Below, piece after piece: positions 1,918-39,087 of a stretch of 64,000 bases of DNA. The first letter of the stretch is position 1. The number at the start of each line of letters is the position of its first letter. The notes beneath the pieces are model-generated. The model was not told where the DNA came from, searched no databases, and saw nothing but the letters and a program-made list of their open reading frames with translations. The translations under genes were made by a program, and so were the position numbers. The stretch comes from Anthoceros angustus (lineage: Eukaryota; Plantae; Anthocerotophyta): the NCBI GenBank assembly GCA_010909165.1, contig MU008166.1, positions 1 to 64,000 of the forward strand, read 5' to 3'.

Positions 1918-2496
1918 CTACGGAGATGGAGAGGGTGCACATATTGTTAATCATGAGTCTTGGCAGCACTTCCCATTGCACTCTACATGATCCGGGACAA
2001 ACTACAAATGGAGCGACATGATCCGGAGGTGGAGATGGAGCAGTGAACCACACAATGTTCCCCGGTCTGCTTGGAAATATTCCCGAGTACATAACATAGA
2101 TGGGGCATCTCCTTTCGGCTCACTTGGCATGAATTCAAATGCAAACTCATGATCCGCTGGGGTGGAGCAAGCACATGGTGTCAACCACGGATCTCGCATG
2201 AGTTCCCAATCCAAGTGATCTTGCGACAATCCACGATGGAGCTTCCACTTTCACAAATCTCCCAAGCTATGCGCACCTTTGACGCCGCAACATCCGAATC
2301 CGTGATGGAGCCTACATCACATTTTACAATCAAGGCGTGATAGCCGGCCTATAGATTTGAAGTAAAAATAAAAAACAATTAACTCACTATTCTAATCCGT
2401 GCAATCTATCTCTAGATGTCATACCATCAGATGCCCACTCGCCACAATTGCCGCAATCCATAGGAAACATAACAAGATACACAAGGATGTCTTCAT
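1918..2496 (-). CDS. Putative secreted Cys/Pro-rich protein, array copy 1 (2 exons; frameshifted as assembled)
   Basis: ATG at 2496 opens MKTSLCILLCFLWIAAIVASGH (signal-peptide-like). Intron 2424-2349 runs from GTATGA through a T-rich tract to CTATAG. Exon 2 ends CCATCTCCGTAG (PSP*). A TATATATA lies ~90 bp upstream. Confidence 0.55.
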
Positions 2497-4069
2497 TGGA
2501 ATGAAAGAAAGAGCCAAACAACAAGATAAAAATATATATATGGAACCTTCCAAGGAAGCTTAGGGAGACCTCATCACCTCACATATATATAGGCACGAAC
2601 TGATCTCGATCACAAGAAATCAAAACAATTTATATTGTCGATTATAAAATAAAATAGATTTCTAATCTAAATTTAAATCCAAGTAAATAAAATATTCAAT
2701 ATATGTACATAGATAGCTTAAGAGAGGTGTAGCGGACATGGGGTCTCTATGCTAAGGTCATATGATGAAAATTGAGAAGAAGCTTTAGGTGTTGCAATTA
2801 CAAGCGTTGGCGATAACATAAGTGCGTGTCAAGTACCGTGACCGTGTTTGGTGTTCGAGTCTTATGACTTATGACCGTATGTATGAAAAGTCAGTAGTTG
2901 AGGGCACGACTGCAGCATGTAACTGACCGGAAGGTCGAAATGCCCGCCGATGGCAAAGGCAGCCGTGGCACTTTGTGCTTGCATGCCGTGGTGAGATTGA
3001 AGTCCTCATCTACTACCTGGAGGAGGATTTTACCTGTGGCACCAAGAGTCAACCTGTGAGCTTCAAGGCGCTTTCTTCGTGGCGTCTTCTTCTCCCTCAT
3101 GGATGTTTGCATGCTCGTTGAAGAAATGGATCATGCATCTTGTTGTTGGGATTGATCCGCTGCTTTGCGCCTTTTTGTGAGACCCGCAGGTGGAACAAAA
3201 TTTCTTTCAATTCAATTCAAATTCTGTTGGCGAGAGGTGGCGGAAGCCAGCTCTTGCCCTCGTTGAGGTGGATTGGGAGCGTTGGCCATGCCAAGGGATG
3301 TGTATACTATTGGGCACCGCCCACCCTTCTCGTAACGCCTCCTTGTTGCCGCTAGGAAGGCCTGCGATCTCCGCGACAAGAAAACCTCGCAGGCCTCCGA
3401 TCCTAATTTCTCAAGCCGATGAACATTGTGTACGCAGACCGCCTTCCTCGTAAGCTATAGCAACGTTTGACGAGCTCTTCTCGCAGAGTGCGGATGATGG
3501 GATGGACCCATTCATGGCTCCTTCTAAGATGTCGGGTCCGATTCACGCCAAGAACGCGCCTCCTTAGTTAGCTCGGTTGGTATAGTTTTTCTACTGCTTA
3601 ATTCCACCGTCTTTGACTAAAGGGCGATGCATACTCGAACTCACAATATAATATGATTTATTTTTCTCGCAAAACATGCTAAGATCACTTAGAGAGGCTT
3701 GCTATTAAATTTATTGTTCTCTAGCACAGAGTTCTATTCCTCAGAATTAGTTATGACATTGAAATAGTCACTAGTGAGTATCATTCTAGGTAGAATGAGC
3801 TTATTCTAAATGGCGACAAAAACAAAGCTCATTCTTTCCAAGAATCACTAGCAAAAATAAGAATGATGGAAGATATTAATTTCTAATGTATATATACATA
3901 TGTATATGCACACGCTTTGTAACCTAAATGTTACATATACTCATATCATTTTAAATAAAATTTGCATATACACGCACACGCTACCTACAAGCAAGCTTCC
4001 ACCTTTAACTCAAAGCGCTTACAATTGTTTTTCAATGATAACCTCAGATATCAATTCCACACAATCTAG

Positions 4070-4648
4070 CTACGGAGATGGAGGGTGCAGACATATTGTT
4101 AATCATGGAGTCTTGGCAGCACTTCCCATTGCACTCTACATGATCCGCGGACATACTACAAATGGAGCGACATGATCCGGAGGTGGAGATGGAGTGTGAA
4201 CCACACAATGTTCCTCTCTCCTTGAAATATTCCCGAGTACATAACATAGATGGGGCATCTCCTTTCGCTCACTTGGCATGAATTCAAATGCAAACTCATG
4301 ATCCCGTGGAGCAAGTGCAAGACATGGTGTCAACCACGGATCTCGGGCATGAGTTCCCAATCCAAGTGATCTTGCACAATCCATGATGGAGCTTCCACTT
4401 TCACAAATCTCCCAAGCTATGCGCACCTTTGACGCGCAACATCCGAATCCGTGATGGAGCCTACATCACATTTTACAATCAAGGTACGTGATAGCCGGCC
4501 CATAGATTTGAAGTAAAAATAAAAAAAACAATTAACTCACTATTCTAATCCGTGCAATCTATCTCTAGATGTCATACCATCGATGCCCACTCGCCACAAT
4601 TGCCGCAATCCATAGGAAACATAACAAGATACACAAGGATGTCTTCAT
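4070..4648 (-). CDS. Putative secreted Cys/Pro-rich protein, array copy 2 (frameshifted as assembled)
   Basis: Same exon/intron layout as copy 1. ORF fragments include AWEICESGSSIMDC, DHEFAFEFMPSE and DHVECNGKCCQDSMINNMSAPS. Confidence 0.5.
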
Positions 4649-6304
4649 TGGAATGAAAGAAAGAGCCAAACAACAAGATAAAAATATATATATGGAACCT
4701 TCCAAGGAAGCTTAGGGAGACCTCATCGCCTCACATATATATAGGCTCGAGCAACCGATCTCGATCACAAGAAATCAAAACAATTTATATTGTCGATTAT
4801 AAAATAAAATAGATTTCTAATCTAAATTTAAATCCAAGTAAATAAAATATTCAATATATGTACATAGATAGCTTAAGAGAGGTGTAGCGGACATGGGGTC
4901 TCTATGCTAAGGTCATATGATGAAAATTGAGAAGAAGCTTTAGGTGTTGCAATTACAAGCGTGATGATAACATAAGGTACGTATCACTGGACCGTTTGGT
5001 GTTCGAGTCTTATGACTTATGACCGAAGGAAAAGTCAGTTGAGGGCACGGACCGGGTAAGCATGCACGACCGAAGGTCGAAATGCCCGCCGATGGCAAAG
5101 GCCGGCCGAGCCGTGGCAATCGCTTGTGCTTGCATGCCGTGTGAGATTGAAGTCCCCTGCCATCTACTCTGGAGGAGGAGGATTTTACCTGCGGCACCAA
5201 GAGCAACTCGTGAGCTTCCAAGGCGCTTTCTTCGGCCTTCTTCCTCCCTCATGGATGTTTGCATGCTCAAGAAATGGATCATGCATCTCTGGGATTGATC
5301 CGCCGCTTTGCGCCTCCTTTTGTGAGACCCGCAGAGGTGGAACAAAATTTCTTTCAATTCAATTCAAATTGTGGCAAGAGGTGGCGGAGAAGCTTGCGGC
5401 TCTTGCCCTCGCTGAGGTGGATTGGGAGCGTCCATGCCAAGGGATGTATACTATTGGGCACCGCCCACCCTCTCGCGCCTCCTTGTTGCCGCTAGGAAGG
5501 CCTATGCGATCTCCGCGACAAGAAAACCTCGCAGGCCTCCGATCCTAATTTCTCGCCGATGAACATTGTACGCCACCGCCTTCCTCGCTGATAAGCTATA
5601 GCAACGCTTGACGAGCTCTTCTCGCAAAGAGCGGATGATGGGATGGACCCATTCATGGCTCCTTCTAAGATGTTTGGTCCGATTCACGCCAAGAACGCGC
5701 TCTCCTTAGTTAGCTCGGTTGGTATAGTTTTTCCTACTGCTTAATTCCACCGCCTTTGACTAAAGGCGTATACTCGAACTCAATATAATATGATTTATTT
5801 TTCTCGCAAAACATGCTAAGATCACTTAGAGAGGCTTGCTATTAAATTTATTGTTCTCTAGTCGCAGAGTTCTATTCTCAGAGAATTAGTTATGACATTG
5901 AAATAGTCACTAGTGAGTATCATTCTAGGTAGAATGAGCTTATTCTAAATGGCGACAAAACAAAGCTCATTCTTTCCAAGAATCACTAGCAAAAATAAGA
6001 ATGATGGAAGATATTAATTTGTAATGTATATATACATATGTATATGCAATACGCTTGTAACCTAAATGTTACATATACTCATATCATTTTAAATAAAATT
6101 TTCATATACACGCACACGCTACCTACAAGCAAGCTTCCACCTTTAACTCAAAGCGCTTACAATTGTTTTTTCAATGATAACCTCAGATATCAATTCCACA
6201 CAATCTAGCTACGGAGATGGAGAGGCAAAGACATATTGTTAATCGGAGTCTTGGCAGACTTCCCATTGCACTCTACATGATCCGCGGACATACTTCGAAT
6301 GTAT

Positions 6305-6697
6305 TGTCACGATAAAGTGACTCCGATCGGCACCAAGCCTAAGACCCCACACCGACGTAAGGAGGCCGACACGCCTGACGCAGCCGCCTGCAGTGAGAGG
6401 GCCTGACACTCTGTGGTACCCACACTGGGTCTCACGAGCCAGAGGATAGCTGCTAGCGCTGTAATCAGGTCGAATCGCCATCCTGCATTCCCACCCGTTA
6501 GGTGCTAACCCCTTCACGTCCCGTAGATAGGAAAACCTGCTACTAACCAATCGATGTAAATAACTGCCGATCGCCTAACAAGCTGGATGTTCTTGGTCCG
6601 TAAGGACCGAGGTGTATAAAACCCACAACAGAATGAAGCCGATTCGAGCACATCACGGAGCCTCGCTCCCGCGGTCCTCGCAGCTTGGGCCGTAGCA
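6305..6697 (+). mobile_element. LTR of a Ty3/gypsy retrotransposon (copy 1)
   Basis: Begins TGTCAC, ends GCA and contains GTATAAAA. Immediately followed by TGGTATC(-)GAGCC (tRNA-iMet PBS-like) and gag-like sequence. Confidence 0.8.
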
Positions 6698-6700
6698 TCT

Positions 6701-6713
6701 TGGTATCGAGCCC
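6701..6713 (+). promoter_or_regulatory. Primer-binding site, tRNA-iMet type (also at ~11076 and ~12588)
   Basis: TGGTATCGAGCC versus canonical TGGTATCAGAGC, located 3 nt after the LTR-terminal CA. Confidence 0.75.
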
Positions 6714-7459
6714 CGCGATCTTCAACAATGATGGCTCACGGAGGGACCCAGACCATCACCATATGACACCGATCGCTCAAGCGTGGCGGCGAGGAGGAGC
6801 CAATCGCTTCTGGTTGCGTGGCGGCCTCGGTTCTTCCCGCCCGGTGACGGGACGCCCACAGCGGTCGGACGCTCCTCTCCCGTGCCGCAGCCGAGACAAT
6901 CAGTGGCGGCTCGCGGCCCGCCCGTCCGGGCCACGAGGATCCATGTGATCCCACCATCCCGGAGGTGGAGATGGAGGTGAACCACACAATGTTCCTGCGG
7001 TCTCCGGTTGGAAATATTCCCGAGTACATAACATAGATGGGGCATCTCCTTTCGGCTCACTTGGCATGAATTCAAATGCAAACTCATGATCCAAGTTGGG
7101 GTGGAGCAAGTGCAGACATGGTGTCAACCACGGATCTCCTGCATGAGTTCCCAATCCAAGTGATCTTGCGACAATCCATGATGGAGCTTCCACTTTCACA
7201 AATCTCCCAAGCTTGGCGATGCACCTTTGACGCAACATCCGATCCGTGATGGAGCCTACATCACATTTTACAATCAAGGTACGTGATAGCCTATAGATTT
7301 GAAGTAAAAATAAAAAACAATTAACTCACTATTCTAATCCAATCTATCTCTAGATGTCATACCATCGATGCCCACTCGCCACAATTGCCGCAATCCATAG
7401 GAAACATAACAAGATACACAAGGATGTCTTCATTGGAATGAAAGAAAGAGCCAAACAAC

Positions 7460-8995
7460 AAGGACATCCGGCGGTAAGGAGGTGCGGCTCTATGATGCAG
7501 GCGGGAGGCCCGGAAGGGTCGGGCCTACCAGAGCAACTCGAGTCCCAAGAGGACACTGTCCCTCGGACCCAGCGCCTCGATAAAAATTACAGTAAGATCG
7601 TAACCACGACCTTCAATGGAAACGAAAAGATGCACAAGCGGTTCATGATCCGGACAAGCCGGACAAGTACCTCGGCCTCGGAGAAGGACGACCAGCGGAA
7701 GATACAATTCTGCGTGATGTATTGGAAGAATGCAGCGTCGTTGGTGGAAGCGGAGGAAAAGCAAGTAGAATTGGGCATGGAAGCCCCATCTACTCGGCCC
7801 TCCTTCCGCCAAATCTTCCTCGAACACTTCACCGTCAACCACGAGGCTGTATCACCGATTGGAAGATTCACCTGACAAATGCATGCAAGAATCTGCGATA
7901 AAATTTGCGGCTAACCTTGGACATGCCCGCTGGGCGAGCAATCGGCGCTTCATCGATGGTGAAATTCGACCTTGAGCCGGCGTCAACCGGCAGCACCGGT
8001 GAGCAATGAAAGCAGCGATTAATTACGGCAATAACAAGTACAAGCATGCCAACACCCAACTGCGAAGCCCAAATGGGGACAAGCGCAAACGCGATGGAAA
8101 AGAAACCGACCTTCAAGCTCTTGGCGAGGAGGAGGCGGAAGAAATGTCGGGACAAACACATGTGCTTCACATGTGCCTCCACCGACCACGGGTCAGTCAT
8201 GCCCACCGTCGGGACTTCATCAAGCGGCTCAAAGGCGGGCGGACCACCCGCCCCTCGGTGGGATCGGAGTAAGCCAAGAGCAACCGAGGTCAAGATCGAG
8301 GAGATCGAGGAACCCCAATCAGCTTGTAGCGCGGGTCGGCCAAACCTCCGACCGACTTCCACATCTGAGTCAAGATGCGATGAAGCATCGGAGGAGGCGA
8401 ACCGGATGGACTCGGGGAGCCAGCCACCATTTCATCTCGCAGCGGCCAACCGCAGTATCCTCATCGTGACACGGACGAGTGTCGACGGTGGTCACCGCGC
8501 TGAACGGCAAGGAGACCGACAAGGAGCGGAGCGCCACCGCCACCGTGGTTTTTCCCGGAGGCACCAAGAGGAACTGGAGTTCACGGTCGTGCCCCTTTGC
8601 CACGATCTCATCGTCGGCAAGCGGTGCCCACCACTCCAAGCACCGCAAATTGACCGGCACACAACACGGTTAGGCACAAGTCGGTGGCACCCAATATGTC
8701 ATGCGGAGACGGATACATCCCGACAAATTGTTGTTTGCGTGATCGGCCCTCAATAAAGCCCAGGCGTTATACATCGCCGGCTCAAGAGAGTCTTACCTCG
8801 GAGGTACAGGCAGTCCGGGCCACTCGGGCCGCCGACACGGAGGTCGCACTTCCGCAGCCATGAAGGATCGCTCACGAGTCGCCGACCGGTTCGAGCCGCC
8901 CGAACTTCCCCACGGCATGGACCACGCCATCGAGCTCGCCCGCACAAACCGTTAGTATACCGCCTTATCGCACGGTGCTGCGTAGCGAAGAAATC
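7460..8995 (+). mobile_element. Ty3/gypsy gag-protease-RT(N-term) fragment
   Basis: Zinc-knuckle-like MCFTCASTDH. Sequence is shared with 13.3-14.6 kb and 17.5-19 kb. Ends in the RT-upstream PPYR..SEEIK segment. Confidence 0.75.
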
Positions 8996-10695
8996 AAAAC
9001 AATTTATATTGTCGATTATAAAATAAAATAGATTTCTAATCTAAATTTAAATCCAAGTAAATAAAATATTCAATATATGTACATAGATAGCTTAAGAGAG
9101 GTGTAGCATGGGGTCTCTATGCTAGGTCATATGATGAAAATTGAGAAGAAGCTTTAGGTGTTGCAATTACAAGCGCGATAACACATAAGGTACGACCAAG
9201 TACTGTGACCGTGTTTGGTGTTGAGTCTGACTTATGACCGATGTGTATGAAAAAAAGTCGTGAGTTGAGGGCACCGGACCGGGTAAGCATGCACCGACGA
9301 AGGTCGAAATGCCCGCCGATGGCAAAGGCCTCGAGCAATCGCTTGTGCTTGCATGCCGGTGAGATTGAAGTCCCTGCTATCTACTCGACCGGAGGAGGAT
9401 TTTACCTGCAAGGCACCAAGAGCCGAACTCGTGAGCTTCCAAGGCGCTTTCTTGTGCCTTCTTCCTCCCTCATGGATGTTTGCATGCTCTTGAAGAAATG
9501 GATCATGCATCTGCTGGGATTGATCCGCTTTGCGCTCTCCTTTGTGGAGACCCAGGGTGGAACAAAATTCTTCAATTCAATTCAATTCTGTGGCAAGAGG
9601 TGGAGAAGCTTGTGCTCTTGCCCTCGCTGAGGTGGATTGGGAGCGTCGCCATGCCAAGGGATGTATACTATTGCACCGCCCAATTCTCTCAACGCCTCCT
9701 GTTGCCGCTTAGGAAGGCCTCGCGCGATCTCCGCGACAAGAAACCTCGGGCCTCCGATCCTAATTTCTGCCGATGAACATTGTGTACGGACCGCCCTTCC
9801 TCGCTGATAAGCTATAGCAACGCTTGACGAGCTCTTCTCGCAGAGTGCGGATGATGGATGGACCCATTCATGGCTCCTTCTAAGATGTCGGGGTCCTGAT
9901 TCACGCCAAGAACGCTCTCCTTAGTTAGCGTTGGTATAGTTTTTCTACTGCTTAATTCCACCCGCCTTGACTAAAGGCGACCGAACTCCATAAAATATAA
10001 TATGATTTATTTTTTTCGCAAAACATGCTAAGATCACTTAGAGAGGCTTGCTCGTGTCGCCCTTGATTCGTGATCGTGGCCAAACCCGACGTGGAGGTTG
10101 TGCGTCGATTAGCGGCGAACAAGGCAACCATCGAACGTACCGATGCCCGTAATCGATGAGATTACGGACCAACTCCATGGGACACGTTACTTCACCAAGA
10201 TCGACCGAGGTCGGTTTTACCGATCGTAATCCGGAAGGCGATGAACATTGTGTACGCCGTGACCGCCCTTCCTCGTTGATAAGCTATAGCAACGCTTGAT
10301 TTAAGCTCTTCTCGCAGAGCGCGGATGATGGGATGGACCCATTCATGGCTCCTTCTAAGATGTCGGGGTCCGATTCACGCCAAGAACGCTCTCCTTAGTT
10401 AGCCTGCTTGGTATAGTTTTTCTCGCCGCTTAATTCCACCGCCTTGACTAAAGGCGATGCATACCGAACTCACAATATAATATGATTTATTTTTTCTCGC
10501 AAAGTCACTTAGAGGCTTGCTATTAAATTTATTGTTCTCTGCAGTTCTATTCTGTAGAATTAGTTATGACATTGAAATAGTCACTAGTCATTCTAGGTAG
10601 AATGAGCTTATTCTAAATGGCAAAAAAACAAAGCTCATTCTTTCCAAGAATCACTAGCAAAAATAAGAATGATGGAAGATATTAATTTGTGAATG

Positions 10696-11630
10696 TGTCA
10701 CATCACTTGATCGCACCAAGAAGTTCCAAGACCCCACGACGTAAAGGGCCAGCCAAACACAGATTTTTCGCTTGCAGCCAGAGGGCCTGACACTCAGTGG
10801 TACTCCACACTCCATCGGACATACATGCCAAAGCGTAATGGTGTCGAATCGCTCTGTTCCCACCCGTTAGGGGTGCTAACCCCTTCACGTCCCGTAGATA
10901 GGAAAACCCCGCTACTAACCAATCGATGCAAATAGACTGCACTGCCCAACAAGTGGATGTTCTTGGTCCGTAAGGACCGAGGTGTATAAAACCCACCAGA
11001 AATGAAAGCATCAGCCGATTCGAGGAGCACATCACGAGCCTGCCTCCCGCGGTCCTCGCATGGGTCAGAGCATCTTGGTATCGAGCCCCGCGATCTTCAA
11101 CAATGATGGCTCACGGAGGGACCCAGACCATCACCATATGACACCGATCGCTCAAGACGAGGAGGAGCCAATCGCCATCGGCGTAGGGCGGCCCTGATTC
11201 TTCCCCGTCACCAAGACGACCGGACGCCACCCCACTCCGGACGCCTTCCCTCCAGACGGCCGAGACAATCCCAAAAGGCGTGACGCCTCGCTGCCGCCCC
11301 GTCCGGGCCACGAGGATCCATGTGATCCCACCATCCCGAGGCCGCCGCCACGGGTGGAGGTCTTTCGACGACATCCTAATCTACACAAGCGATCGGAGGA
11401 ACACTATCGATTATTCCGGCGAGTCATGGAACTCCTTGGAAGCATAATCTCTGGCAAAAGAAGCAAGTGCGTCTTTATGCGGGAAAAATCACGACAGGGC
11501 ACATCATACGTGCGGCGGTATCTCGATCGACACCCGCAAAACCAAGGCGATTATGGAGTGGCCCTTCCAGGGCGTGATCGGTGCGAGGCTTCCTCGGCAT
11601 GGCGGTTTCTACCGAGTTCGTCCATTTGAT
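10696..11630 (+). mobile_element. Ty3/gypsy LTR (10696-11072), PBS, gag start and an RT fragment
   Basis: LTR homologous to 6305-6697. Jumps at ~11340 into the RT VEVFFDDILIY-like segment. Confidence 0.75.
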
Positions 11631-12207
11631 CATGCCATGCCAAGGGATGTATACTATTGCACCGCCCAATTCTCTCAACGCCTCCTGTTGCCGCTTAGGA
11701 AGGCCTCGCGCGATCTCCGCGACAAGAAACCTCGGGCCTCCGATCCTAATTTCTGCCGATGAACATTGTGTACGGACCGCCCTTCCTCGCTGATAAGCTA
11801 TAGCAACGCTTGACGAGCTCTTCTCGCAGAGTGCGGATGATGGATGGACCCATTCATGGCTCCTTCTAAGATGTCGGGGTCCTGATTCACGCCAAGAACG
11901 CTCTCCTTAGTTAGCCTGCTTGGTATAGTTTTTCTCGCCGCTTAATTCCACCGCCTTGACTAAAGGCGATGCATACCGAACTCACAATATAATATGATTT
12001 ATTTTTTCTCGCAAAGTCACTTAGAGGCTTGCTATTAAATTTATTGTTCTCTGCAGTTCTATTCTGTAGAATTAGTTATGACATTGAAATAGTCACTAGT
12101 CATTCTAGGTAGAATGAGCTTATTCTAAATGGCAAAAAAACAAAGCTCATTCTTTCCAAGAATCACTAGCAAAAATAAGAATGATGGAAGATATTAATTT
12201 GTGAATG

Positions 12208-18200: not shown

Positions 18201-21200
18201 ACCGACCACGGTCGGGTCATGCCCACACCGCCGACTTCATCAATCGGCTCAAAGAGACGGGCGACCACCGCCTCGGGATGGAGGTAAGCCCAAGAGCAAC
18301 TGGGGTCAAGATCGAGGAGATCGAGGAACCCCAAATCACCGCTCGCGCGGGCAGTCGGCCAAACCTCACTCGCCTGACTTCCCAACCGTCCCACATACCG
18401 ATCAAGATGAAGCATCGAGGAGAGCGGGCAATCTGCCGGGACTCGTGAGCCCCACCATTTCATCTCGCAGCCCAACCGTAATCCCAGGGACACGGACGAG
18501 TGTCGGTGGTCACCGCTCAACGGCAAGGAGACCGACAAGGAGCGGAGCGCCACCGCCACCGTGGTTTTTCCCGGAGGGCACCAAGAGGAACGGAGTTCAG
18601 CCGTGCCGCCTTTGCCACGATCTCATCGCAAAACCGTGGCTTGCCCACCACCCAAGCACCGCAAATTGACCGGGCACACAACACTATAGTGCCTGGGTGG
18701 CACCTAATATGTCATGCGTGATGTATACATCCCGACAAATTGTTGTTTGCGTGATCGGCCCTCAATAAAGCTGCCGGCAACATATGTACATCGCCCAAGA
18801 GAGTCTTACCGGAGGGTACGGCAGCAGTCCCGCCACCGCCGACACGGAGGTCGCACTCCGTGCCATGAAGGATCTCATGCACCGCCGACCGGCTCGAGCC
18901 GCCCATAACTTCCCCACGGTCCGTGGACCACGCCATCGAGCTTCGCACAAACCGTTAGTATACCGCCTTATCGCATGCTGCAGTAGCGAAGAAATCAAGA
19001 GGCGTGGATGAACTCATGCAGGGCTTCGCTCGCCCTGTCGCCTTGGCACCCGTGATGTGGTGGCCAAACCCGACATGGAGGTTGTGCGCCGACACGGCCC
19101 GAATAAGGCCATCGTGAACGCAGGTCGATGCCCGTAATCGGCGAGATTCGACCAACCCATGGGGACACATTTCACCAAGATCGACCGAGGTTTTACCAGA
19201 TTTAATCCGGAAGGCGAACACAAGACCGCCTTCCGACAAGGCACGCCACTCGAGTGGGTCGTTATGGCGCTCGGCTCACTAACGCCCCGCCACCTCCGGC
19301 CCGGAGGACACCACTACTCGGCCTCGGCATCTCATCGGACCCATGGGACCGATGCAGAGGCCGCGTCTCATCGGGCCCTAACCCTCTTCATCCGCCCCAT
19401 TGCTCCAGCCACGGCCCTCAATAGCATGCCCGGCAAGTATGTACATCGCCCGCCAAGAGAGTCTTACTGGAGGGTACGGCAGAGTCCCGCCACTCAGCCG
19501 CCGAGGTCGCACTTCCGCAGCCATGAAGGATCGCTGCACTCGCCGACGGCTCGAGCCGCCCAACAACTTCCCCACGCCCCCGTGGACCACGCCATCGAGC
19601 TCGCCCGCACAAACCGTTAGTATACCGCCTTATCGCACGGCCGCAGCGAAGAAATCAAGAGGCGTGGATGAACTCTTACACAGGGCTTCGCTCGCCCTGT
19701 CGCCTTCGCACCCGTGATGTGGGCCAAACCCGACCAGGAGGTTGTGCGTCGATGCCCCAATAAGGCAACCATCGTGAACGTACGATGCCCGTAATCGATG
19801 AGACGGACCAACCCATGGGACACGTTACTTCACCAAGATCGACGAGGTCGTGGTTTTACCAGATCGAATCCGGAAGGCGATGAACACAAGACCGCCTTCC
19901 GCACAAGGCACCACTCGAGTGGGTCGTTATGGCGCTCGGCTCACTAACGCCCCGCCACCTTCCAAAGGTCTCATGCAGAGATCCCGAGGCCGCCACCACG
20001 GGTGGAGGTCTTTCGACGACATCCTAATCTACACAAGCCAGAGGAACACCACGCTTATTCCAGAGTCATGGAACTCCTTCAAGCATAATCTCCTGCAAAG
20101 AAGCAAGGCGCCTTTATGCGGGAAAATGCGAATACCTGGGCACATCATCTGCGCCGACGATCTCACGACACCCGCAAAACCAAGTATTATGGAGTGGCCC
20201 TTCCAATGACGTGACCAAGCGAGGCTTCCTCGCATGGCGGTGTTTCTACCGCAGTTCGTCCTGCACTTCACGAATTGCCATGCCACCGATGAGGCCCTCA
20301 AAGCATCCGTAAGGCCATCACGCTGGGGAAAGACGCCAAGAGGCCTTCTCTCTCTGAACGCCTCTCAAGACCGCCTCCCGTCTGCTGTATGACCCGCACT
20401 AGGCACACGGACATCAGCTATTGGGGCCGTGTTGTCCCAAAACGGTGGTCATCGCCACGAGTCTCAGAGATGTGCACAACGAACTTCATGCAGCGACAAG
20501 GAAATGTTAGCCATCATACACGCCACCAAGGTATGGCGCCACTACTCGGCCAACATTTCACTTGCTTCACCGACCACCATTCACATGCACTTTTTCAACC
20601 ACTACTCAACGCACGCTACCGGTCCGAACACTTAGCCGATTATGATATGGACATCAAACGTGACGGGACCCTCCAACGCCGTGGGGCGACGGCCGGCGGA
20701 GGGCCCGCACCTTGATGGTGACATACCGGAAACCTCGCGCCAAGTTCGCAGTGCAAAGGACCCAAAATGGTGGTCCTTTATCAACAGTGTTAGCGACACG
20801 CAAGCCGGATACCCACTAGCCTCCCAGTCTACTCTATCAAGGACGCAAAACCAGACGGAAGGGCCATTGGTCATACCAACCCAAATGACCCAACTCCGAC
20901 GCCATCATCCTACACGACCGCACGACACCGATCTCGTGGACACCAGATCGACAAAACTTATGCGAGGGTCAAGCAAAGATTACCATTGGGAGGACATGCA
21001 GATGTCATAGCATGGGTCCGCCTCGCACCTCCCGCCAACAGTCAAACCCGAGCATCGAAACTCCCGGTCAGCAACCCTTACAGATCTCTTGGCGATTTCA
21101 CCATCTCCATGGACTTCATCACTCACCTACCTGACACGCCCGCAAGGAGATCCGGGTGATTGTCACCGATTGTCCAAGGTTTGCCACCTAGTCCCCACCA

Positions 21201-24200
21201 TGCCTACGCTGCCAAGAACCGCCTGATGTTTATCCGGAAGTGTTTCTACCGCATGGCGCCTCAAAAGTGTGTCCGGCGAGACACGGTTCACATCTCGCCT
21301 GAAGACGCTCACGTAATCCTCGATCCGCAACTCATGTCCACACCGCCACCCCGAGACGGCCGATTGAGAAGCACAACCAAGTCTCTCAAGACATGGTGTC
21401 AACCACGGATCCGCATGAGTTCCCAATCCAAGTGATCTTGCAGACAATCCATGATGGAGCTTCCACTTTCACAAATCTCCCAAGCTTGCGATGCACCTTG
21501 ACGGCCTTCCATACACTTCGGATGTGTTGGGCTGTCCAACACCTGGATCGCCTTGCATCCCTATCCTCCGGCCTCAAGTTCCTCTTCCCCGGCTCCTAGC
21601 AACAACTTGCTTCTTAGGTGCGCCACCATCTTGTACCTTCAAAATAATCGCACAAACCGTTAGTATACCGCCTTATCGCACGGTGCTGCGTAGCGAAGAA
21701 ATCAAGAGGCGTGGATGAACTCTTACAGCAGCTTCTCGCCCTGTCGCCTTCGGCACCCGTGACAATGGCCAAACCCGACGTGGAGGTTGTGCCGATTACG
21801 CCAATAAGGCAACCATCGAACGCAGATGCCCGTAATCGGCGAGATCGACCAACCCATGGACCATTTCACCAAGATCGACCGAGGTCGTGGTTTTACCGCA
21901 TCGTAATCCGGAAGGCGATGACAAGACCGCCACAAGTGGGTCGCATGGCGCTCGGCTCACCAACGCCCCGCCACCTTCCAAAGGTCTCATGCAAGAGATC
22001 CCGAGGCCGCCGCCACGGGTGGAGGTCTTTCCGACGACATCTACACAAGGGCCCAGGGAACACTACCGCTATTCCGAGTCATGGAACTCCTTCGAAGCAT
22101 AATCTCGCAAAAGAAGCAAGCGCCTTTATGCGGTGAAAATGCGGGCACATCATCGGCCGACGTATCTCACGACACCAAAACCAAGGCGATTATGGAGTGG
22201 CCCTTCCAACGACGTGACCACCGGGCGAGGCCTCGGCATGGCGTGTTTCTACCGCAGTTCGCCTGAATTTTAACGAATTGCCATGCCACCGACAGAGGCC
22301 CTCAAAGCATCCTGAAGGCCATCACGCTGGGGAAAGACGCCAAGAGGCCTTCTCTCTCCGAACGGCCTCAAGACCGCCTCCGCCCTTGTGGCGGACCGCG
22401 CAGCCCCCACACACACGACGCCTCGATCAGTAGCCGTGTTGTCCCAAAACGGCAGGTCATCGCCACGAGTCCCAGAGCTGGTGGTACAACGAATCACGCT
22501 GCACGACAAGGAAATGTTAGCCATCATACACGCCACCAAGGTATGGCGCCACTACCTACTCGGCCAACATTTCACTTGCTTCATCGACCACCATTCGATA
22601 CTTTTTCAACCACCTACTCAACGCATCGCACCGGGTCCGAACACTTAGCCGATTATGATATGGACATCAAATACGCGTGACGGACCCTCCAACGCCGTGG
22701 CAGACGCTGGCCAGCAGGAGGGCCTGCACCTTGATGGTGACACATTGGAAACTGCGCCAAGTTCGCGCAGCCTCGCCAAAGGACCCAAAATGGTGGTCGC
22801 TTTATCAGTGTGTTAGCAGACACGCAAGCCGGCATACCCACTAGCCTCCCGCAGTCTACTCTATCAAGGACGCAAACTCAGATCGGAAGGGCCATTTGGT
22901 CATACCAACCCACCGACCCAACTCCGACGGCCATCCTACACGACCGACGGCCGATCTCGGGACACCTCGATCGACAAAACTTATGCGAGGGTCACAAAGA
23001 TTACCATTGGGAGGACATGCGCAGATGTCATAGCATGGGTCCGCTCCCGCACCTCCCGCCAACAGTCAAACCCGAGCATCGAAACTCCCGGCCGCAACCC
23101 TTACAGATCCCGCTTGGCGATTTCACCATCTCCATGGACTTCATCACTCACCTACCTCGGACACGCTCCAAGGATGATCCGGGTGATTGTCGACCGATTG
23201 TCCAAGGTTTGCCACCTAGTTGTCACCTCGGTTTACACACAATTGCGATTTCTTCACTCGCCACATAAAATCCACCAAGAGCAACTTCAGCCCTTTTCCA
23301 CTTACCGCAACATCCGAATCCGTGATGGAGCCTACATCACATTTTACAATCAAGGCGTGATAGCCTATAGATTTGAAGTAAAAATAAAAAAACAATTAAC
23401 TCACTATTCTAATCCGCAATCTATCTCTAGATGTCATACCAACCCAAATGACCCAACTCCGACGCCATCATCCTACACGACCGCACGACACCGATCTCGT
23501 GGACACCAGATCGACAAAACTTATGCGAGGGTCAAGCAAAGATTACCATTGGGAGGACATGCAGATGTCATAGCATGGGTCCGCCTCGCACCTCCCGCCA
23601 ACAGTCAAACCCGAGCATCGAAACTCCCGGTCAGCAACCCTTACAGATCTCTTGGCGATTTCACCATCTCCATGGACTTCATCACTCACCTACCTGACAC
23701 GCCCGCAAGGAGATCCGGGTGATTGTCACCGATTGTCCAAGGTTTGCCACCTAGTCCCCACCATGCCTACGCTGCCAAGAACCGCCTGATGTTTATCCGG
23801 AAGTGTTTCTACCGCATGGCGCCTCAAAAGTGTGTCCGGCGAGACACGGTTCACATCTCGCCTGAAGACGCTCACGTAATCCTCGATCCGCAACTCATGT
23901 CCACACCGCCACCCCGAGACGGCCGATTGAGAAGCACAACCAAGTCTCTCAAGACATGCCGCGCCACTTCGCCAGAAAACAAGGACGGTGGGAGGAGCTT
24001 TTACCTCTTATGGAGCCAGATAACCTCCAAGCATGCCGCAACCGAGTCGCCTTCAAGCTCTTGTATGGTGAATGCCCACCACCTGGCCTCGCCCTCCTCC
24101 CAACGCCAATGGCAAAGCGCCGAACTCACGGAGGATGTGTTTCACAAGTTCATGAGGCACGCAAGAAGTAGTGATGTACAAGCATGTCGACAAGGACGCC

Positions 24201-24370
24201 CATCTCTTACCAGTTGGACAGATGGTGTGGCTTCGATGAAGCCCCATAGGTATCCTCTCTGCGTGTCTCGCAAGCTCGCTGCATCGGCCAGGGTCCTTTC
24301 CCATCACCCGATCAACCCGGCCGATATCGCTTGGGCTTGCAGACCGGAAGATGTGCTTGACGCTCCATGT
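12208..24370 (+). mobile_element. Scrambled, partly duplicated Ty3/gypsy (chromovirus-like) element: LTR 12208-12584, gag, PR, RT, RNase H, integrase
   Basis: RT motifs FTKID..GF, EHKTAF, LTNAP, FDDILIY at 19.1-20.2 and 21.7-22.2 kb. RNase H DKEMLAIIHATKVWRHYLLGQHFTCFIDH at 20.4-20.6 and 22.4-22.6 kb. Integrase ISMDFITHLP..VIVDRLSK at 21.1 and 23.1-24.3 kb. The RT-RH-INT order is gypsy-type. Heavily frameshifted; no 3' LTR seen. Confidence 0.9.
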
Positions 24371-25702
24371 CTCTATGCTAAGGTCATATGATGAAAATTG
24401 AGAAGAAGCTTTAGGTGTTGCAATTACAAGCGTGACGATATAACATAAGGTACGATCAAGTACCGTGACCGTGTTTGGTGTTGAGTCTTATGACTTATGA
24501 CCGTATGAAAAAGTAGTTGAGGGCACGGACGGGTAAGCATGCACCGGATGGAAGGTCGAAATGCCCGCCGATGGCAAAGGCCCGAGCTGCGGCAATCGCT
24601 TTTGCTTGCATGCCGTGAGATTGAAGTCCCCTATCTACTCGGATGGAGGAGGATTTTACGGACCAAGAAATGTGAGCTTCAAGGCGCTTTCTTCGTGGCG
24701 TCTTCTTCCTCCCTCATGGATGTTTGCATGCTCGTTGAAGAAATGGATCATGCATCTTCTGTTGGGATTGATCCGCTGCGCCTCCTTTTGTGAGACCTGC
24801 AGAGGTGGAACAAAATTTCTTTCAATTCAATTCAAATTAGTTGTGGCAAGAGGTGGCGGTGAGAAGCTTGTGCTCTTGCCCTCGTTGAGGTGGATTGGGA
24901 GCGTCGCCATGCCAAGGGGATGTGTATACTATTGGGCCAATTCTCTCGACGCCTCCTTGTTGCCGCTAGGAAGGCCTGCGCGATCTCCGCGACAAGAAAA
25001 CCTCGCAGGCCTCCGATCCTAATTTCTCAAGCCGATGAACATTGTGTACGCCGCGTCCTTCCTCGTTGATAAGCTATAGCAACGCTTGACGAGCTCTTCT
25101 CGCAGAGTGCGGATGATGGGATGGACCCATTCATGGCTCCTTCTAAGATGTCGGGTCCGTGATTCACGCCAAGAACGCGCTCTCCTTAGTTAGCTCGTTG
25201 GTATAGTTTTTTTCATGCTTAATTCCACCGCCTTTGACTAAAGGGCGATGCATACTCGAACTCACAATATAATCTGATTTATTTTTTCTCGCAAAACATG
25301 CTAAGATCACTTAGAGAGGCTTGCTATTAAATTTATTGTTCTCTAGCTGCAGAGTTCTATTCCCTGTAGAATTAGTTATGACATTGAAATAGTCACTAGT
25401 GAGAATCATTCTAGGTAGAATGAGCTTATTCTAAATGGCGACAAAAAAAACAAAGCTCATTCTTTCCAAGAATCACTAGCAAAAATAAGAATGATGGAAG
25501 ATATTAATTTCAGTAATGTATATATACATATGTATATGCAATACGCTTGTAACCTAAATGTTACATATACTCATATCATTTTAAATAAAATTTGCATATA
25601 CACGCATACACGCTACCTACAAGCAAGCTTCCACCTTTAACTCAAAGCGCTTACAATTGTTTTTCAATGATAACCTCCGTATATCAATTCCACACAATCT
25701 AG

Positions 25703-26285
25703 CTACGGAGATGGAGAGGGTGCAAACATATTGTTAATCATGGAGTCTTGGCAGCACTTCCCATTGCACTCTACATGATCCGCCGGACATACTACAAATG
25801 GAGCGACATGATCCGGAGGTGGAGATGGAGCAGTGAACCACACAATGTTCCCCTGGTCTCCGGTTGGAAATATTCCCGAGTACATAACATAGATGGGGCA
25901 TCTCCTTTCGCTCACTTGGCATGAATTCAAATGCAAACTCATGATCCATTGGGGTGGAGCAAGTGCACATGGTGTCAACCACGGATCTCCGCATGAGTTC
26001 CCAATCCAAGTGATCTTGCACAATCCAGATGGAGCTTCCACTTTCACAAATCTCCCAAGCTTACGATGCACCTTGACGCCGCAACATCCGAATCCGTGAT
26101 GGAGCCTACATCACATTTTACAATCAAGTGATAGCCGCCTATAGATTTGAAGTAAAAATAAAAAACAATTAACTCACTATTCTAATCCGTGCAATCTATC
26201 TCTAGATGTCATACCATCGGATGCCCACCGCCACAATTGCCGCAATCCATAGGAAACATAACAAGATACACAAGGATGTCTTCAT
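25703..26285 (-). CDS. Putative secreted Cys/Pro-rich protein, array copy (frameshifted as assembled)
   Basis: ORF 25703..26071 gives the uninterrupted C-terminal part RCPIYVMYSGIFPTGDQGNIVWFTAPSPPPDHVAPFVVCPADHVECNGKCCQDSMINNMFAPSPSP*. Signal exon ATG at 26285. Confidence 0.55.
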
Positions 26286-27883
26286 TGGAATGAAAGAAAG
26301 AGCCAAACAACAAGATAAAAATATATATATGGAACCTTCCAAGGAAGCTTAGGGAGACCTCATCACCTCACATATATATAGGCTGGAGCAACTGATCTCT
26401 CGATCACAAGTAATCAAAACAATTTATATTGTCGATTATAAAATAAAAATAGATTTCTAATCTAAATTTAAATCCAAGTAAATAAAATATTCAATATATG
26501 TACATAGATAGCTTAAGAGAGGTGTAGCGGACATGGGGTCTCTATGCTAAGGTCATATGATGAAAATTGAGAAGAAGCTTCAGGTGTTGCAATTACAAGC
26601 GTTGACGATAACATAAGGTACGTATCAAGTACCAGGACCGTGTTTGGTGTTCGAGTCTTATGACTTATGACCGTATGTATGAAAAAGTCGCCGTAGTTGA
26701 GGGCACGGACCAGGGTAAGCATGCACCGGTTGGAAGGTCGAAATGCCCGCCGATGGCAAAGGCCCTCGAGCGTGCACCGCTTTGTGCTTGCATGCCGTGT
26801 GAGATTGAAGTCCCATCTACTGTCTACGGAGGGGATTTTACCTGGGGCGACCAAGAGCTGAACTCGTGAGCTTCCAAGGCTTTCGTGGCGCCTTCTTCCT
26901 CCCTCATGGATGTTTGCATGCTCGTTGAAGAAATGGATCATGCATCTTCTGGGATTGATCCGCTGCGCTCTCCTTTTGTGAGACCCGCAGAGGTGGAACA
27001 AAATTTCTTTCAATTCAATTCAATTCGTTGTGGCAAGAGGTGGCGGTGGAGAAGCTTCGTGCTCTTGCCCTCGTTGAGGTGGATTGGGAGCGTGCTGGCC
27101 ATGCCAAGGGATGTGTATACTATTGGGCACCGCCCCAATTCTCTCGAACGCCTCCTTGTTGCCGCTAGGAAGGCCTGCGCGATCTCCATGGACAAGAAAA
27201 CCTCGCAGGCCTCCGATCCTAATTTCTCAAGCCGATGAACATTGTGTACGCCCTTCCTCGTTGATAAGCTATAGCAACGCTTGACGAGCTCTTCTCGCAG
27301 AGTGCGGATGATGGGATGGACCCATTCATGGCTCCTTCTAAGATGTCGGGTCCAGATTCACGCCAAGAACGCTCTCCTTAGTTAGCTCGTTGGTATAGTT
27401 TTTCTCACTTAATTCCACCCCGCCTTTGACTAAAGGGCGATGCATACTCGAACTCACAATATAATATGATTTATTTTTCTCAAAACATGCTAAGATCACT
27501 TAGAGAGGCTTGCTATTAAATTTATTGTTCTCTAGCCGGTTCTATTCCTGTAGAATTAGTTATGACATTGAAATAGTCACTAGTGAGTATCATTCTAGGT
27601 AGAATGAGCTTATTCTAAATGGCGACAAAAAAAACAAAGCTCATTCTTTCCAAGAATCACTAGCAAAAATAAGAATGATGGAAGATATTAATTTCAAGAA
27701 TGTATATATACATATGTATATGCACGTTTGTAACCTAAATGTTACATATACTCATATCATTTTAAATAAAATTTTCATATACACGCATACACGCTACCTA
27801 CAAGCAAGCTTCCACCTTTAACTCAAAGCGCTTACAATTGTTTTTTCAATGATAACCTCCGATATCAATTCCACACAATCTAG

Positions 27884-28489
27884 CTACGGAGATGGAGAGG
27901 GTGCAAGACATATTGTTAATCATGGAGTCTTGGCAGCACTTCCCATTGCACTCTACATGATCCGCCGGACATACTACAAATGGAGCGACATGATCCGGAG
28001 GTGGAGATGGAGCAGGTGAACTACACAATGTTCCCCGCGGGTCTCCCGGTTGGAAATATTCCTGAGTACATAACATAGATGGGGCATCTCCTTTCGGCTC
28101 ACTTGGCATGAATTCAAATGCAAACTCATGATCCAGCGTTTGGGGTGGAGCAAGTGCAGACATGGTGTCAACCACGGATCTCCGGGCATGAGTTCCCAAT
28201 CCAAGTGATCTTGCGGACAATCCACGATGGAGCTTCCACTTTCACAAATCTCCCAAGCTTGCGATGCACCTTTGACGCCGCAACATCCGAATCCGTGATG
28301 GAGCCTACATCACATTTTACAATCAAGGTGCGTGATAGCCGCCTATAGATTTGAAGTAAAAATAAAAAACAATTAACTCACTATTCTAATCCGTGCAATC
28401 TATCTCTAGATGTCATACCATCGATGCCCACTCGCCACAATTGCCGCAATCCATAGGAAACATAACAAGATACACAAGGATGTCTTCAT
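27884..28489 (-). CDS. Putative secreted Cys/Pro-rich protein, array copy (frameshifted as assembled)
   Basis: Same layout. Fragments include DCPQDHLDWELMPGDPWLTPC and LDHEFAFEFMPSEPK. Confidence 0.55.
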
Positions 28490-30099
28490 TGGAATGAAAG
28501 AAAGAGCCAAACAACAAGATAAAAATATATATGGAACCTTCCAAGGAAGCTTAGGGAGACCTCATCACTCACATATATATAGGCTCGAGCAACGATCTCT
28601 CGATCACAAGAAATCAAAACAATTTATATTGTCGATTATAAAATAAAAATAGATTTCTAATCTAAATTTAAATCCAAGTAAATAAAATATTCAATATATG
28701 TACATAGATAGCTTAAGAGAGGTGTAAGGACATGGGGTCTCTATGCTAAGGTCATATGATGAAAATTGAGAAGAAGCTTTAGGTGTTGCAATTACAAGCG
28801 TTGATTTATAACATAAGGTACGTATCAAGTACCGTGACCGTGTTTGGTGTTCGAGTCTTATGACTTATGACCGTATGTATGAAAAGTCGCCGTAGTTGAG
28901 GGCACGGACCAGTGGTAAGCATGCATCGGATCGGAAGGTCGAAATGCCCGCCGATGGCAAAGGCCACGAGCCGTGGCACTGCTTTGTGCTTGCATGCCGT
29001 GTGAGATTGAAGTCCTCGCTATCTACTGGAGGAGGAGGGATTTTACCTGCGGTACCAAGAGCTGAACTGTGAGCTTCCAAGGCGCTTTCGTGGCGTCTTC
29101 TTCCTCCCTCATGGATGTTTGCATGCTCGTTGAAGAAATGGATCATGCATCTGCTGGGATTGATCCGCTTTGCGCCTCCTTTTGTGAGACCCGCAGAGGT
29201 GGAACAAAATTTCTTTCAATTCAATTCAATTCTGTGTGGCAAGAGGTGGCGGTGGAGAAGCTTCGTGCTCTTGCCTCGTTGAGGTGGATTGGGAGCGCAG
29301 GGCCATGCCAAGGGGATGTGTATACTATTGGGCACCCCACCTTCTCTCGTAACGCCTCCTTGTTGCCGCTAGGAAGGCCTGCAGCGATCTCCGCGACAAG
29401 AAAACCTCGCAGGCCTCCGATCCTAATTTCGCCGATGAACATTGTGTACGCCAGACCGTCCTTCCTCGTTGATAAGCTATAGCAACGCTTGACGAGCTCT
29501 TCTCGCAGAGTGCGGATGATGGGATGGACCCATTCATGGCTCCTTCTAAGATGTCGGGGTCCAGATTCACGCCAAGAACGCGCCTCCTTAGTTAGCTCGT
29601 TGGTATAGTTTTTCTCATTGTTAATTCCACCCGCCTTTGACTAAAGGGCGATGCATACTCGAACTCACAATATAATATGATTTATTTTTCTAAAACATGC
29701 TAAGATCACTTAGAGAGGCTTGCTATTAAATTTATTGTTCTCTAGCCGCAGAGTTCTATTCCTCAGAGAATTAGTTATGACATTGAAATAGTCACTAGTG
29801 AGTATCATTCTAGGTAGAATGAGCTTATTCTAAATGGCGACAAAAAAAACAAAGCTCATTCTTTCCAAGAATCACTAGCAAAAATAAGAATGATGGAAGA
29901 TATTAATTTCAGAATGTATATATACATATGTATATGCACACGCTTTGTAACCTAAATGTTACATATACTCATATCATTTTAAATAAAATTTGCATATACA
30001 CGCATACACGCTACCTACAAGCAAGCTTCCACCTTTAACTCAAAGCGCTTACAATTGTTTTTCAATGATAACCTCCGATATCAATTCCACACAATCTAG

Positions 30100-30694
30100 C
30101 TACGGAGATGGAGAGGGTGCAAAGACATATTGTTAATCATGGAGTCTTGGCAAGACTTCCCATTGCACTCTACATGATCCGCGGACATACTACAAATGGA
30201 GCGACATGATCCGGAGGTGGAGATGGAGCAGTGAACCACACAATGTTCCCATGGTCTCCGGTTGGAAATATTCCCGAGTACATAACATAGATGGGGCATC
30301 TCCTTCGGCTCACTTGGCATGAATTCAAATGCAAACTCATGATCCAGTTGGGGTGGAGCAAGTGCAGACATGGTGTCAACCACGGATCTCCGGGCATGAG
30401 TTCCCAATCCAAGTGATCTTGCGGACAATCCAGATGGAGCTTCCACTTTCACAAATCTCCCAAGCTTGCGATGCACCTTGACGCCGCAACATCCGAATCC
30501 GTGATGGAGCCTACATCACATTTTACAATCAAGGTACGTGATAGCCCTATAGATTTGAAGTAAAAATAAAAAACAATTAACTCACTATTCTAATCCGTGC
30601 AATCTATCTCTAGATGTCATACCATCAGATGCCCACTCGCCACAATTGCCGCAATCCATAGGAAACATAACAAGATACACAAGGATGTCTTCAT
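30100..30694 (-). CDS. Putative secreted Cys/Pro-rich protein, array copy (frameshifted as assembled)
   Basis: Same layout as the other copies, with ATG at 30694 and TAG at 30100-30102. Confidence 0.55.
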
Positions 30695-31046
30695 TGGAAT
30701 GAAAGAAAGAGCCAAACAACAAGATAAAAATATATATATGGAACCTTCCAAGGAAGCTTAGGGAGACCTCATCAGCCTCACATATATATAGGCTCGAGCA
30801 ACTGATCTCGATCACAAGTAATCAAAACAATTTATATTGTCGATTATAAAATAAAAATAGATTTCTAATCTAAATTTAAATCCAAGTAAATAAAATATTC
30901 AATATATGTACATAGATAGCTTAAGAGAGGTGTAGCGGACATTGGGTCTCTATGCTAAGGTCATATGATGAAAATTGAGAAGAAGCTTTAGGTGTTGCAA
31001 TTATAAGCGTTGACGATAACATAAGGTACGTATCAAGTACCAGGAC

Positions 31047-38600: not shown

Positions 38601-39087
38601 GATCTGAGGATACCCCTTGGCTGTCTGAGCCGGGAAAGTTGGGAAGCTTCTGGAAAGTGGTGGGACGGGGTATGGTTTGGTTCTGGATTGCAAGTCCAGA
38701 GTTCGTGTCTGATTATGAACTTTGCATGTGGAATTATTGGCTTGGGATTCTGTCTTGCTGAAACTTTCTTGTGCTGTGATGATACCAACTGTTTTGGACT
38801 AGAGTTTCTGATCTGATTATCAGCAGATCTGACGATACCCCTTGGCTGTCTGAGCAAAGCTGCCTTATAACTTGGCTGTCTGGACCTTGACTAGATGACT
38901 GTTAGGCTGGATTGTGCTCATCTCGGTGTATTTGCTCTCGATGCAGTTTGTGGACAAGGACATTCCTTGGGCCCATTTGGACATTGCGGGGCCAGTGTGG
39001 AACGACAAGAAAGGCGGGGGCACAGGTTTTGCTGTCGCCACCCTTGTGGAATGGATTGTCAAGCATTCATCGCCACCTAGAAGCTGA
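35628..39087 (+). CDS. LAP: M17 leucine aminopeptidase with N-terminal transit peptide (multi-exon)
   Basis: Spliced motifs VGKGLTFD|[48 protein letters not shown]. Exon 1 35628-36011, exon 2 36094-36505, last exon 38947-39087. GT-AG introns. Confidence 0.95.
38203..38856. repeat. ~219-bp tandem repeat x3 in the last LAP intron
   Basis: GGAAGC(T)G/TCTGGAAAGT..TATGGTTTGGTTCTG recurs at ~38204, 38422 and 38642. Confidence 0.9.

Follow-up and report, generated by a model that had tools for sequence, protein, structure and literature searches.

Architecture of the array

The window analyzed here is the whole stretch of 64,000 nucleotides at positions 1 to 64,000 of contig MU008166.1 of Anthoceros angustus. 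On its minus strand it harbors a head-to-tail array of a 2.2-kb unit, represented by at least six units and by fragments. Units are 2152-2205 nt long and, as assembled, 90-95% identical to each other, with differences that are mostly indels. When the unit at 26286-28489 was compared with the window by blastn, identities of 90-94% were obtained and gap positions outnumbered mismatches. The blocks of the array, the copies of the putative gene within them and the predicted parts of each copy are as follows.

1115-7462, minus strand: left array block, a partial unit and copies 1-3 (blastn with the unit at 26286-28489 as query)
1834-2591, minus strand: copy 1; TATA boxes at 2591 and 2540, ATG at 2496, exon 1 2496-2425, intron 2424-2349, exon 2 from 2348
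3985-4743, minus strand: copy 2; ATG at 4648, exon 1 4648-4578, intron 4577-4500, exon 2 from 4499
6123-7433, minus strand: copy 3; ATG at 7433, exon 2 interrupted at 6302-6958 by a repeat of 657 bp
7463-24368, no strand assigned: nest of GC-rich repeats with embedded unit pieces, which splits the array (repeat comparison)
21389-21503, minus strand: fragment of a broken copy, 5' half of exon 2 (blastn)
23305-23441, minus strand: second fragment of that broken copy, covering the 3' end of exon 1, the intron and the first part of exon 2 (blastn)
24369-31050, minus strand: right array block, copies 4-6 and 357 nt of a further unit (blastn and start spacing)
25617-26380, minus strand: copy 4; ATG at 26285, exon 1 26285-26215, intron 26214-26139, exon 2 from 26138
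27798-28581, minus strand: copy 5; ATG at 28489, exon 1 28489-28419, intron 28418-28343, exon 2 from 28342
30015-30790, minus strand: copy 6; ATG at 30694, exon 1 30694-30623, intron 30622-30547, exon 2 from 30546
34755-35634, minus strand: outlying unit pieces without a gene part (blastn); a CAG/CTG-depleted domain ends just past them

Start-to-start spacing in the right block is 2204 and 2205 nt. The intervening nest contains a GC-rich repeat family of about 1.5 kb (7454-8997, 13361-14596, 14762-15772, 16562-17227 and 17578-18998) and, at 8988-12200, further unit pieces that are free of the gene; a Pfam search with the long ORFs of the nest identified no family. The initial annotation of this DNA had counted five complete copies and one interrupted copy, with fragments at about 21.4 and 23.3 kb, and this count was confirmed. 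The interrupted one is copy 3, in which exon 2 is split and the promoter is cut off at 7462, 29 nt upstream of the ATG, and replaced by a GC-rich repeat; it is a dead gene copy. With its head-to-tail kilobase units, their high identity and a gene-like unit in each, the array has the make-up of a gene macrosatellite.

A gene-like start in every unit

The minus strand contains six perfect matches to the first 29 nt of the leader, where 0 would be expected. In five copies the TATA box TATATATA precedes the ATG by 92-96 nt, in agreement with the motif that had been noted about 90 bp before the start codon, and a second one is found 44 nt upstream in four copies. Exon 1 is 71 nt long in four copies and 72 nt (24 codons) in two. 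It is followed in every copy by a GTATGA...TAG intron, and without splicing the leader frame hits a stop 5 codons into it. The 76-nt length given for this intron by the initial annotation holds in four copies, while 72 and 78 nt were found in the other two as assembled; the 2424/2349 junction is exact in copy 1.

The predicted leader consists of 22 residues with a basic residue at position 2, an uncharged hydrophobic core of 16 residues and small residues before the likely cleavage site, and by a simple filter it qualifies as the N-terminal signal peptide expected of secreted cysteine-rich proteins. Applied to every frame in the whole window that begins with ATG and has 22 codons or more, the filter passed only seven of 1186, six of which are the array leader. 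About 0.03-0.04 such leaders would be expected per unit. Since a signal-peptide-like leader is this rare in the window, it is likely that an orphan gene exists here or existed until recently. TATA boxes, a signal-peptide-like exon and a short canonical intron together support the earlier proposal that each unit bears a gene-like start.

Exon 2, probable assembly errors and searches for relatives

As assembled, exon 2 contains several stops in all frames in each copy. The initial annotation had joined frames across copies into a secreted protein of about 170 aa, a path that requires about eight frame changes and along which the majority consensus of the copies is not open. Three stretches of exon 2 could be checked against short-read contigs from one DNA run (X1), with gaps at about nt 117-192 and 365-420 lying outside them, and each is one continuous sequence with no shift. 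The contigs contradict four of the frame changes (those following AASK, MPSE and GDQG and the one preceding the final APSPSP stop) as well as the stop itself, and the 170-aa protein was therefore abandoned. The checked frame containing CNGKCCQDS continues to a stop about 85 nt further on; in copy 1 the two stops end at 1918 and 1834, respectively. At the start of exon 2, the checked sequence is open for 38 codons in the frame set by the 71-nt exon 1, with splice phase taken from exon lengths only, and stops after 10 codons if exon 1 is 72 nt long. The checked middle offers two alternative open frames of 57 codons.

Among individual copies, the 3' part of copy 4 (25547-25754) is covered by a short-read contig that reveals one missing G after 25725 and puts the APSPSP tail outside the frame. 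Copy 5 is covered at 28226-28361, with a single substitution at 28330 that is synonymous when read in the frame of exon 1. Copy 6 is covered at 30182-30353 and 30628-30794, with indels at 30251, 30303 and 30775. The AGP/extensin-like motifs that had been suggested for the protein are reduced to a lone APSPPP in one of the checked middle frames, and repeated SP3-5 or AP/SP/TP-rich modules forming much of the protein, as in extensins or AGPs, were not found. A coding role for exon 2 is itself inferred, and the product would measure at least 80 aa, the length read from copy 5 as assembled, and at most about 205 aa.

Several ways of opening exon 2 were evaluated. A dynamic programme over the variants observed in exon 2 found 1.6% of 4.1e10 combinations open in sense and none in antisense. 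When the same programme was run along the whole unit, open mosaics of 487-733 nt were obtained outside exon 2 on both strands. As paths of the same length also occur in other parts of the unit, an open hopped path is no evidence here, and frame-hopping openness was dropped as a sign of coding. Repair by majority rule or by choosing the most methylatable motif left stops in exon 2. Choosing the longest variant opened a single frame over all 466 nt, using a 7-nt variant present in copy 3 only and an 18-nt variant present in copy 5 only, both of which are contradicted by the short-read contigs. This open frame is weak, as about 1.6% of combinations are open and three rules were tried.

The differences between copies are bound to particular sequence contexts. 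In an alignment of five units, indels affected 224 columns and substitutions 154, and of 79 variable spots 57 include CG and 10 more include CHG only. Variable columns took in 42 of 42 CAG, 47 of 56 CTG and 59% of CG sites, compared with 10-17% for AT, TA and TT. A comparison of the run X1 contigs with the assembly over 5.4 kb gives 29 indels and nine substitutions, and the letters inserted in the contigs are rich in C and G (e.g., CGCACGGA and CGC). The initial annotation had attributed the indels to consensus error and not to shared inactivation, which is supported by their association with CG and CAG/CTG and by the short-read differences. In addition, CAG/CTG is depleted over the first ~35 kb of the window and nowhere else, with observed/expected ratios of 0.29-0.63 over 1-34 kb and of 1.0-1.8 over most of 36-64 kb. 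Error context and depletion fit long-read errors at methylated cytosines and hence a silenced block. Judged from the context of the errors, the array would be cytosine-methylated, and it probably lies in a methylated, repeat-invaded block that is probably silent.

Searches for relatives were negative. Pfam gave no match at E < 0.03 for any ORF of the unit, an Atlas neighbour search returned none, and protein word searches and one exhaustive search detected no relative; these protein searches were run on unjoined, unrepaired and non-consensus sequence, and exon 1 with its 24 codons is too short alone. Three matches of the exhaustive search were long, internally repetitive proteins with scores summed over many weak repeats and were judged to be due to chance. 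One of them, P0001, has 12 repeats of the HYR (hyalin repeat) domain of about 80 residues; the match reached just 17/38 identities in one repeat and lay partly on a mis-framed stretch, and Pfam gave no HYR match. Exact patterns of invariant 29- and 30-mers were not found in metagenome contigs in two scans, no described CRP family was matched, and a literature search yielded nothing specific. The earlier statement that the family is not recognised stands, and the unit matches neither a TE ORF nor a known family. Such a lack of relatives would be expected of a non-gene as much as of an orphan. Among the contigs of a second run of the same sample (X2), guessed to be RNA and uncalibrated on an expressed gene, none fell on 25500-30900.

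Interpretation and comparison with known systems

On balance we favor, by a modest degree, a lineage-specific two-exon gene for a secreted protein, or a young pseudogene of it, in each unit of a methylated, repeat-invaded head-to-tail array. The array of 2.2-kb units would sit in repeat-invaded, cytosine-methylated DNA, and each gene would consist of TATA boxes, the signal-peptide-like leader of 22 residues, a short GT..AG intron just after it and an exon 2 of about 450-550 nt. Most of the frame breaks would stem from consensus errors of the long reads at CG and CAG/CTG sites that are methylated, and because of these the assembled copies are unreadable as protein. The array would be silent in the sampled tissue. 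Against the gene stand the breaks in every assembled copy, the 72-nt exon 1 of two copies with its early stop in the checked exon 2, the frame-hopping paths of 500-730 nt that both strands of the unit offer in other places, next to which openness weighs little, and the absence of relatives and of contigs of the guessed RNA run on the array.

The same observations can be read as a non-coding macrosatellite, in which the leader-like frame, like the GT..AG and the TATA runs, would have arisen by chance or be left from a far-decayed gene in an AT-rich part of the unit, with nothing translated. Broken copies and a broken majority consensus, mosaic-open paths of equal length elsewhere in the unit, the missing relatives and RNA contigs and the position of the array within a repeat nest with a methylation-type footprint all agree with it. 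We nevertheless regard it as rather unlikely, as a signal-peptide-like leader occurs outside the array in just one of about 1180 window frames, the leader has a short canonical intron directly behind it and TATA boxes 44 and 95 nt upstream, and the short-read-checked start of exon 2 extends the frame of the 71-nt exon 1 by 38 codons.

The view of the initial annotation, taken in full, would be that at least five copies work and that the gene, expressed and dosage-amplified, encodes a Cys/Pro-rich secreted protein of about 170 aa and is masked solely by consensus errors. That the breaks are mostly technical, that promoter, leader and intron are kept in five copies and that the longest-variant choice opens one frame over the 466-nt exon 2 speak for it. 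Its path is nevertheless contradicted by the short-read contigs at four frame changes and at the stop, as are two of the longest-variant choices; no contig of the guessed RNA run was found, and the methylation-type footprint, seen in the error pattern and the CAG/CTG depletion, spans promoter and gene body. A working amplified gene is consequently unsupported, and we consider this proposal improbable. That the unit is part or cargo of a transposable element and its frame a TE gene remnant is least credible and very improbable, because, although the array lies among repeats and unit pieces are scattered at 8988-12200 and 34755-35634, the units are strictly head-to-tail, insertions breaking one array explain the scattered pieces, and neither a Pfam match for any unit ORF nor a protein relative was found.

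Returning to the two-exon gene or young pseudogene, it is a speculative extension, with little probability of being correct, that some copies are intact in the real genome and active only in an unsampled stage or condition (such as sex organs, sporophyte or cyanobacterial symbiosis). They would then encode a dosage-amplified, family-less secreted cysteine-rich protein, and the array would belong to a genome-wide class of methylated gene macrosatellites acting as conditionally released gene banks. The main value of the locus is cautionary: the probably methylated repeats of this assembly are unreadable as protein, and frames stitched over copies are no evidence of coding in it. The array would be an intron-bearing secreted orphan case without a recognisable parent family, and the gene, having kept its intron, would not be a retrocopy.

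Human D4Z4 with DUX4 is a gene-bearing macrosatellite that is normally silenced by DNA methylation. The hornwort array resembles it in its kilobase-scale tandem unit, each with a complete small transcription unit, which is predicted here; there is no homology between the two, and methylation and silence of the hornwort array are deduced from sequence. Plants also possess small secreted cysteine-rich proteins encoded in tandem clusters, such as the defensin-like, LTP-like, Gnk2-like and other families. Those clusters consist of diverged paralogues, whereas the hornwort units are near-identical 2.2-kb repeats without a family motif match. Both share tandem amplification and lineage restriction, a signal peptide on a short exon 1, an adjoining intron and a cysteine-containing mature part, which is putative here, and lineage-specific arrays of genes or pseudogenes are common in plant genomes.

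Layout of the array and its surroundings

On the minus strand of the window, the opening 29 nt of the proposed reading frame are found in six perfect copies, where none would be expected by chance. To map the array, the unit at 26286-28489 was compared with the window by blastn, and the resulting blocks together with the six exact starts confirm the tandem amplification described in the initial annotation.

Parts of the array
2496, 4648, 7433, 26285, 28489 and 30694, minus strand: ATG of copies 1 to 6, exact 29-nt match
1115-7462: left block of the array, blastn with the unit
24369-31050: right block of the array, blastn with the unit
8988-12200, 21389-21503, 23305-23441 and 34755-35634: outlying pieces of the unit, blastn with the unit

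From the two blocks and the outlying pieces it follows that a single array of 2.15-2.2 kb units was split by later insertions. These insertions form a nest of GC-rich repeats, the long open reading frames of which matched no Pfam family. Copy 3 is dead from two separate causes, as the region upstream is lost (replaced from 29 nt before the ATG) and exon 2 is interrupted at 6302-6958 by a repeat of 657 bp that belongs to a local family. Inside the nest, duplicates of 0.5-1.1 kb were observed (13229-14371 equals 14630-15772, 20870-21395 equals 23433-23958, and 10239-11341 resembles 11757-12853) with an identity of 100% (or 98.9%), while the remaining nest copies are only about 80-85% alike. The near-identical duplicates are either very recent duplications or an assembly stutter inflating the region.

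A 2847 nt contig of the DNA short-read run at depth 12.7 matches the window at 26582-26725 and departs from the unit at 26725 into dissimilar sequence; this break is the unit joined to other DNA without a place in the window. If a depth of 12.7 is close to single-copy, the depth of 30-60 in the unit contigs would point to just a few copies, near the assembled number.

The window is plant DNA with plant snoRNA genes. A sharp compositional boundary separates positions 1-35600 from 36000-64000. Directly outside the repeat block, the transporter and acyltransferase frames represent ordinary genes, and a 220-nt tandem repeat in three copies (38200-38861, plus strand) resembles a small cluster of snoRNA genes.

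Neighbouring features
38325-38415 and 38767-38861, plus strand: plant C/D-box snoRNA family snoZ157/R69, matched in full at both places within the 220-nt repeat
42535-44337, plus strand: sugar/MFS transporter match, one open frame of 601 codons (E 5e-49)
52084-53211, plus strand: acyltransferase family match, 376-codon frame (E 9e-17)

The gene-like start of the unit

In all copies except copy 3, TATATATA precedes the ATG by 92-96 nt; four of these five non-dead copies have a second TATATATA 44 nt before the ATG, so that two TATA runs precede the leader. In the same five copies the first exon measures 71-72 nt (among all six, 71 nt in four and 72 nt in two) and the second exon is kept. The intron, GTATGA...TAG, is 76 nt long in each of them apart from copy 2 (78 nt as assembled). 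This canonical short intron begins within two codons after the leader, and without splicing the leader frame reaches a stop five codons into it.

Frames were filtered for signal-peptide-like starts, which had to show a basic residue among residues 1 to 5 and a stretch of 12 uncharged residues with a mean hydropathy of 2.3 or more. Of the 1186 frames in the window that begin with ATG and span 22 codons or more, only 7 passed, six of them being the array leader; about 0.03-0.04 such frames would be expected per unit. The sole other frame to pass, at 51658 on the minus strand, begins MEVWKVSVVLFALAALLV; another gene for a secreted protein may start there. The gene-like start proposed initially is thus upheld by a rare leader, the intron and the TATA runs. 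Because of these features and of 38 open codons past the acceptor in short-read-checked sequence, we favor a real or recently real gene as the likelier reading, with reasonable though not strong confidence.

Reading frames of the second exon

The protein put forward initially, stitched across copies and frames, did not withstand scrutiny. Several stops occur in each frame of exon 2 in every copy, and a majority consensus taken column by column does not stay open on the proposed path. When any observed variant was allowed at each variable spot, 1.6% of combinations were open over exon 2 and none in antisense. Over the whole unit, the same mixing left mosaics open for 487-517 nt in two further sense-strand regions and for up to 733 nt in antisense, and an open stitched path therefore carries no evidence. 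A repair of exon 2 by three rules set beforehand was also rejected: only taking the longest variant opened an exon-wide frame, and short reads contradict two of its choices.

Three short-read contigs, which follow the dominant path and can hide rare variants, covered three stretches of exon 2 with two gaps remaining. In copy 5 (28226-28361) one substitution was needed, and the frame from a 71-nt exon 1 runs unshifted from RLSRTLIVKC to AASKVHRKLGRF; upstream, the AWEICE frame contains a stop. In copy 6 (30182-30353), after removal of one base and addition of another, two frames are open over all 57 codons, one with DHEFAFEF and one with NIVWFTAPSPPP, while the proposed RCPIYVMY stretch falls between stops in the third frame. 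In copy 4 (25547-25754) the contig adds one G, and the CNGKCCQDS frame passes the proposed stop at APSPSP and continues for 36 codons to a stop ending at 25617, which removes both that stop and the extensin-like tail. A 72-nt exon 1 joined to the checked start of exon 2 meets a stop after 10 codons. Taken together, exon 1 lengths and checked stretches therefore give candidate products with lengths from 80 aa (in the assembled copy 5) up to about 205 aa.

Copy differences, relatives and expression

Across five aligned units, 1633 columns were invariant, 224 held indels and 154 substitutions. The variable columns group into 79 spots, 57 with CG and 10 more with only a CHG site. Variable columns took up CAG in 42 of 42 occurrences, CTG in 47 of 56 and CG in 59%, compared with 10-17% for AT, TA and TT and 19% of all columns. 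Deamination of methylated cytosine yields transitions and no length change; systematic errors of long-read basecalling at methylated motifs are well known. Between 25500 and 30900, contigs of the DNA run (one run, possibly of the source sample) showed at least 29 small indels relative to the assembly, along with 9 substitutions, and the letters that they add are C/G-rich. This disagreement and the binding of variable columns to CG, CAG and CTG bear out the initial view that many breaks are technical. CAG/CTG observed/expected ratios were 0.29-0.63 at 1-34 kb and rose to 1.0-1.8 over most of the genic half, which begins at 36 kb, a shift that coincides with the end of the array and the repeat nest; for CG the ratio was near 0.9-1.1 in the repeat half and low (0.4-0.75) in the genic half. 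We read the error pattern and the CAG/CTG depletion as a likely footprint of CG and CHG methylation, which would have entered the assembly as errors.

Relatives were searched with the exons separately, as assembled. As initially supposed, no known family emerged: Pfam gave no match below E 0.03, the protein atlas no usable neighbour, and word searches with stop-free references of copies 4, 6 and 3 (both halves, both middle frames) no match. Among 1.84 billion representatives, an exhaustive search returned only three matches, all long repetitive proteins; they were rejected as relatives, the scores being summed over repeats and the best single repeat reaching 17/38 identities, partly in a mis-framed stretch. 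Two invariant words did not occur in metagenome scans.

The array yielded no contig in a single run guessed to be RNA from the same sample, which is weak evidence since the run was uncalibrated on an expressed gene; the gene was probably silent in the tissue sampled. For a working dosage-amplified gene, as first suggested, nothing was found in support. The best account is a probably methylated, repeat-invaded tandem array with a two-exon orphan gene, or a young pseudogene of it, for a secreted protein in its unit; context-bound long-read errors would have made the assembled copies unreadable.
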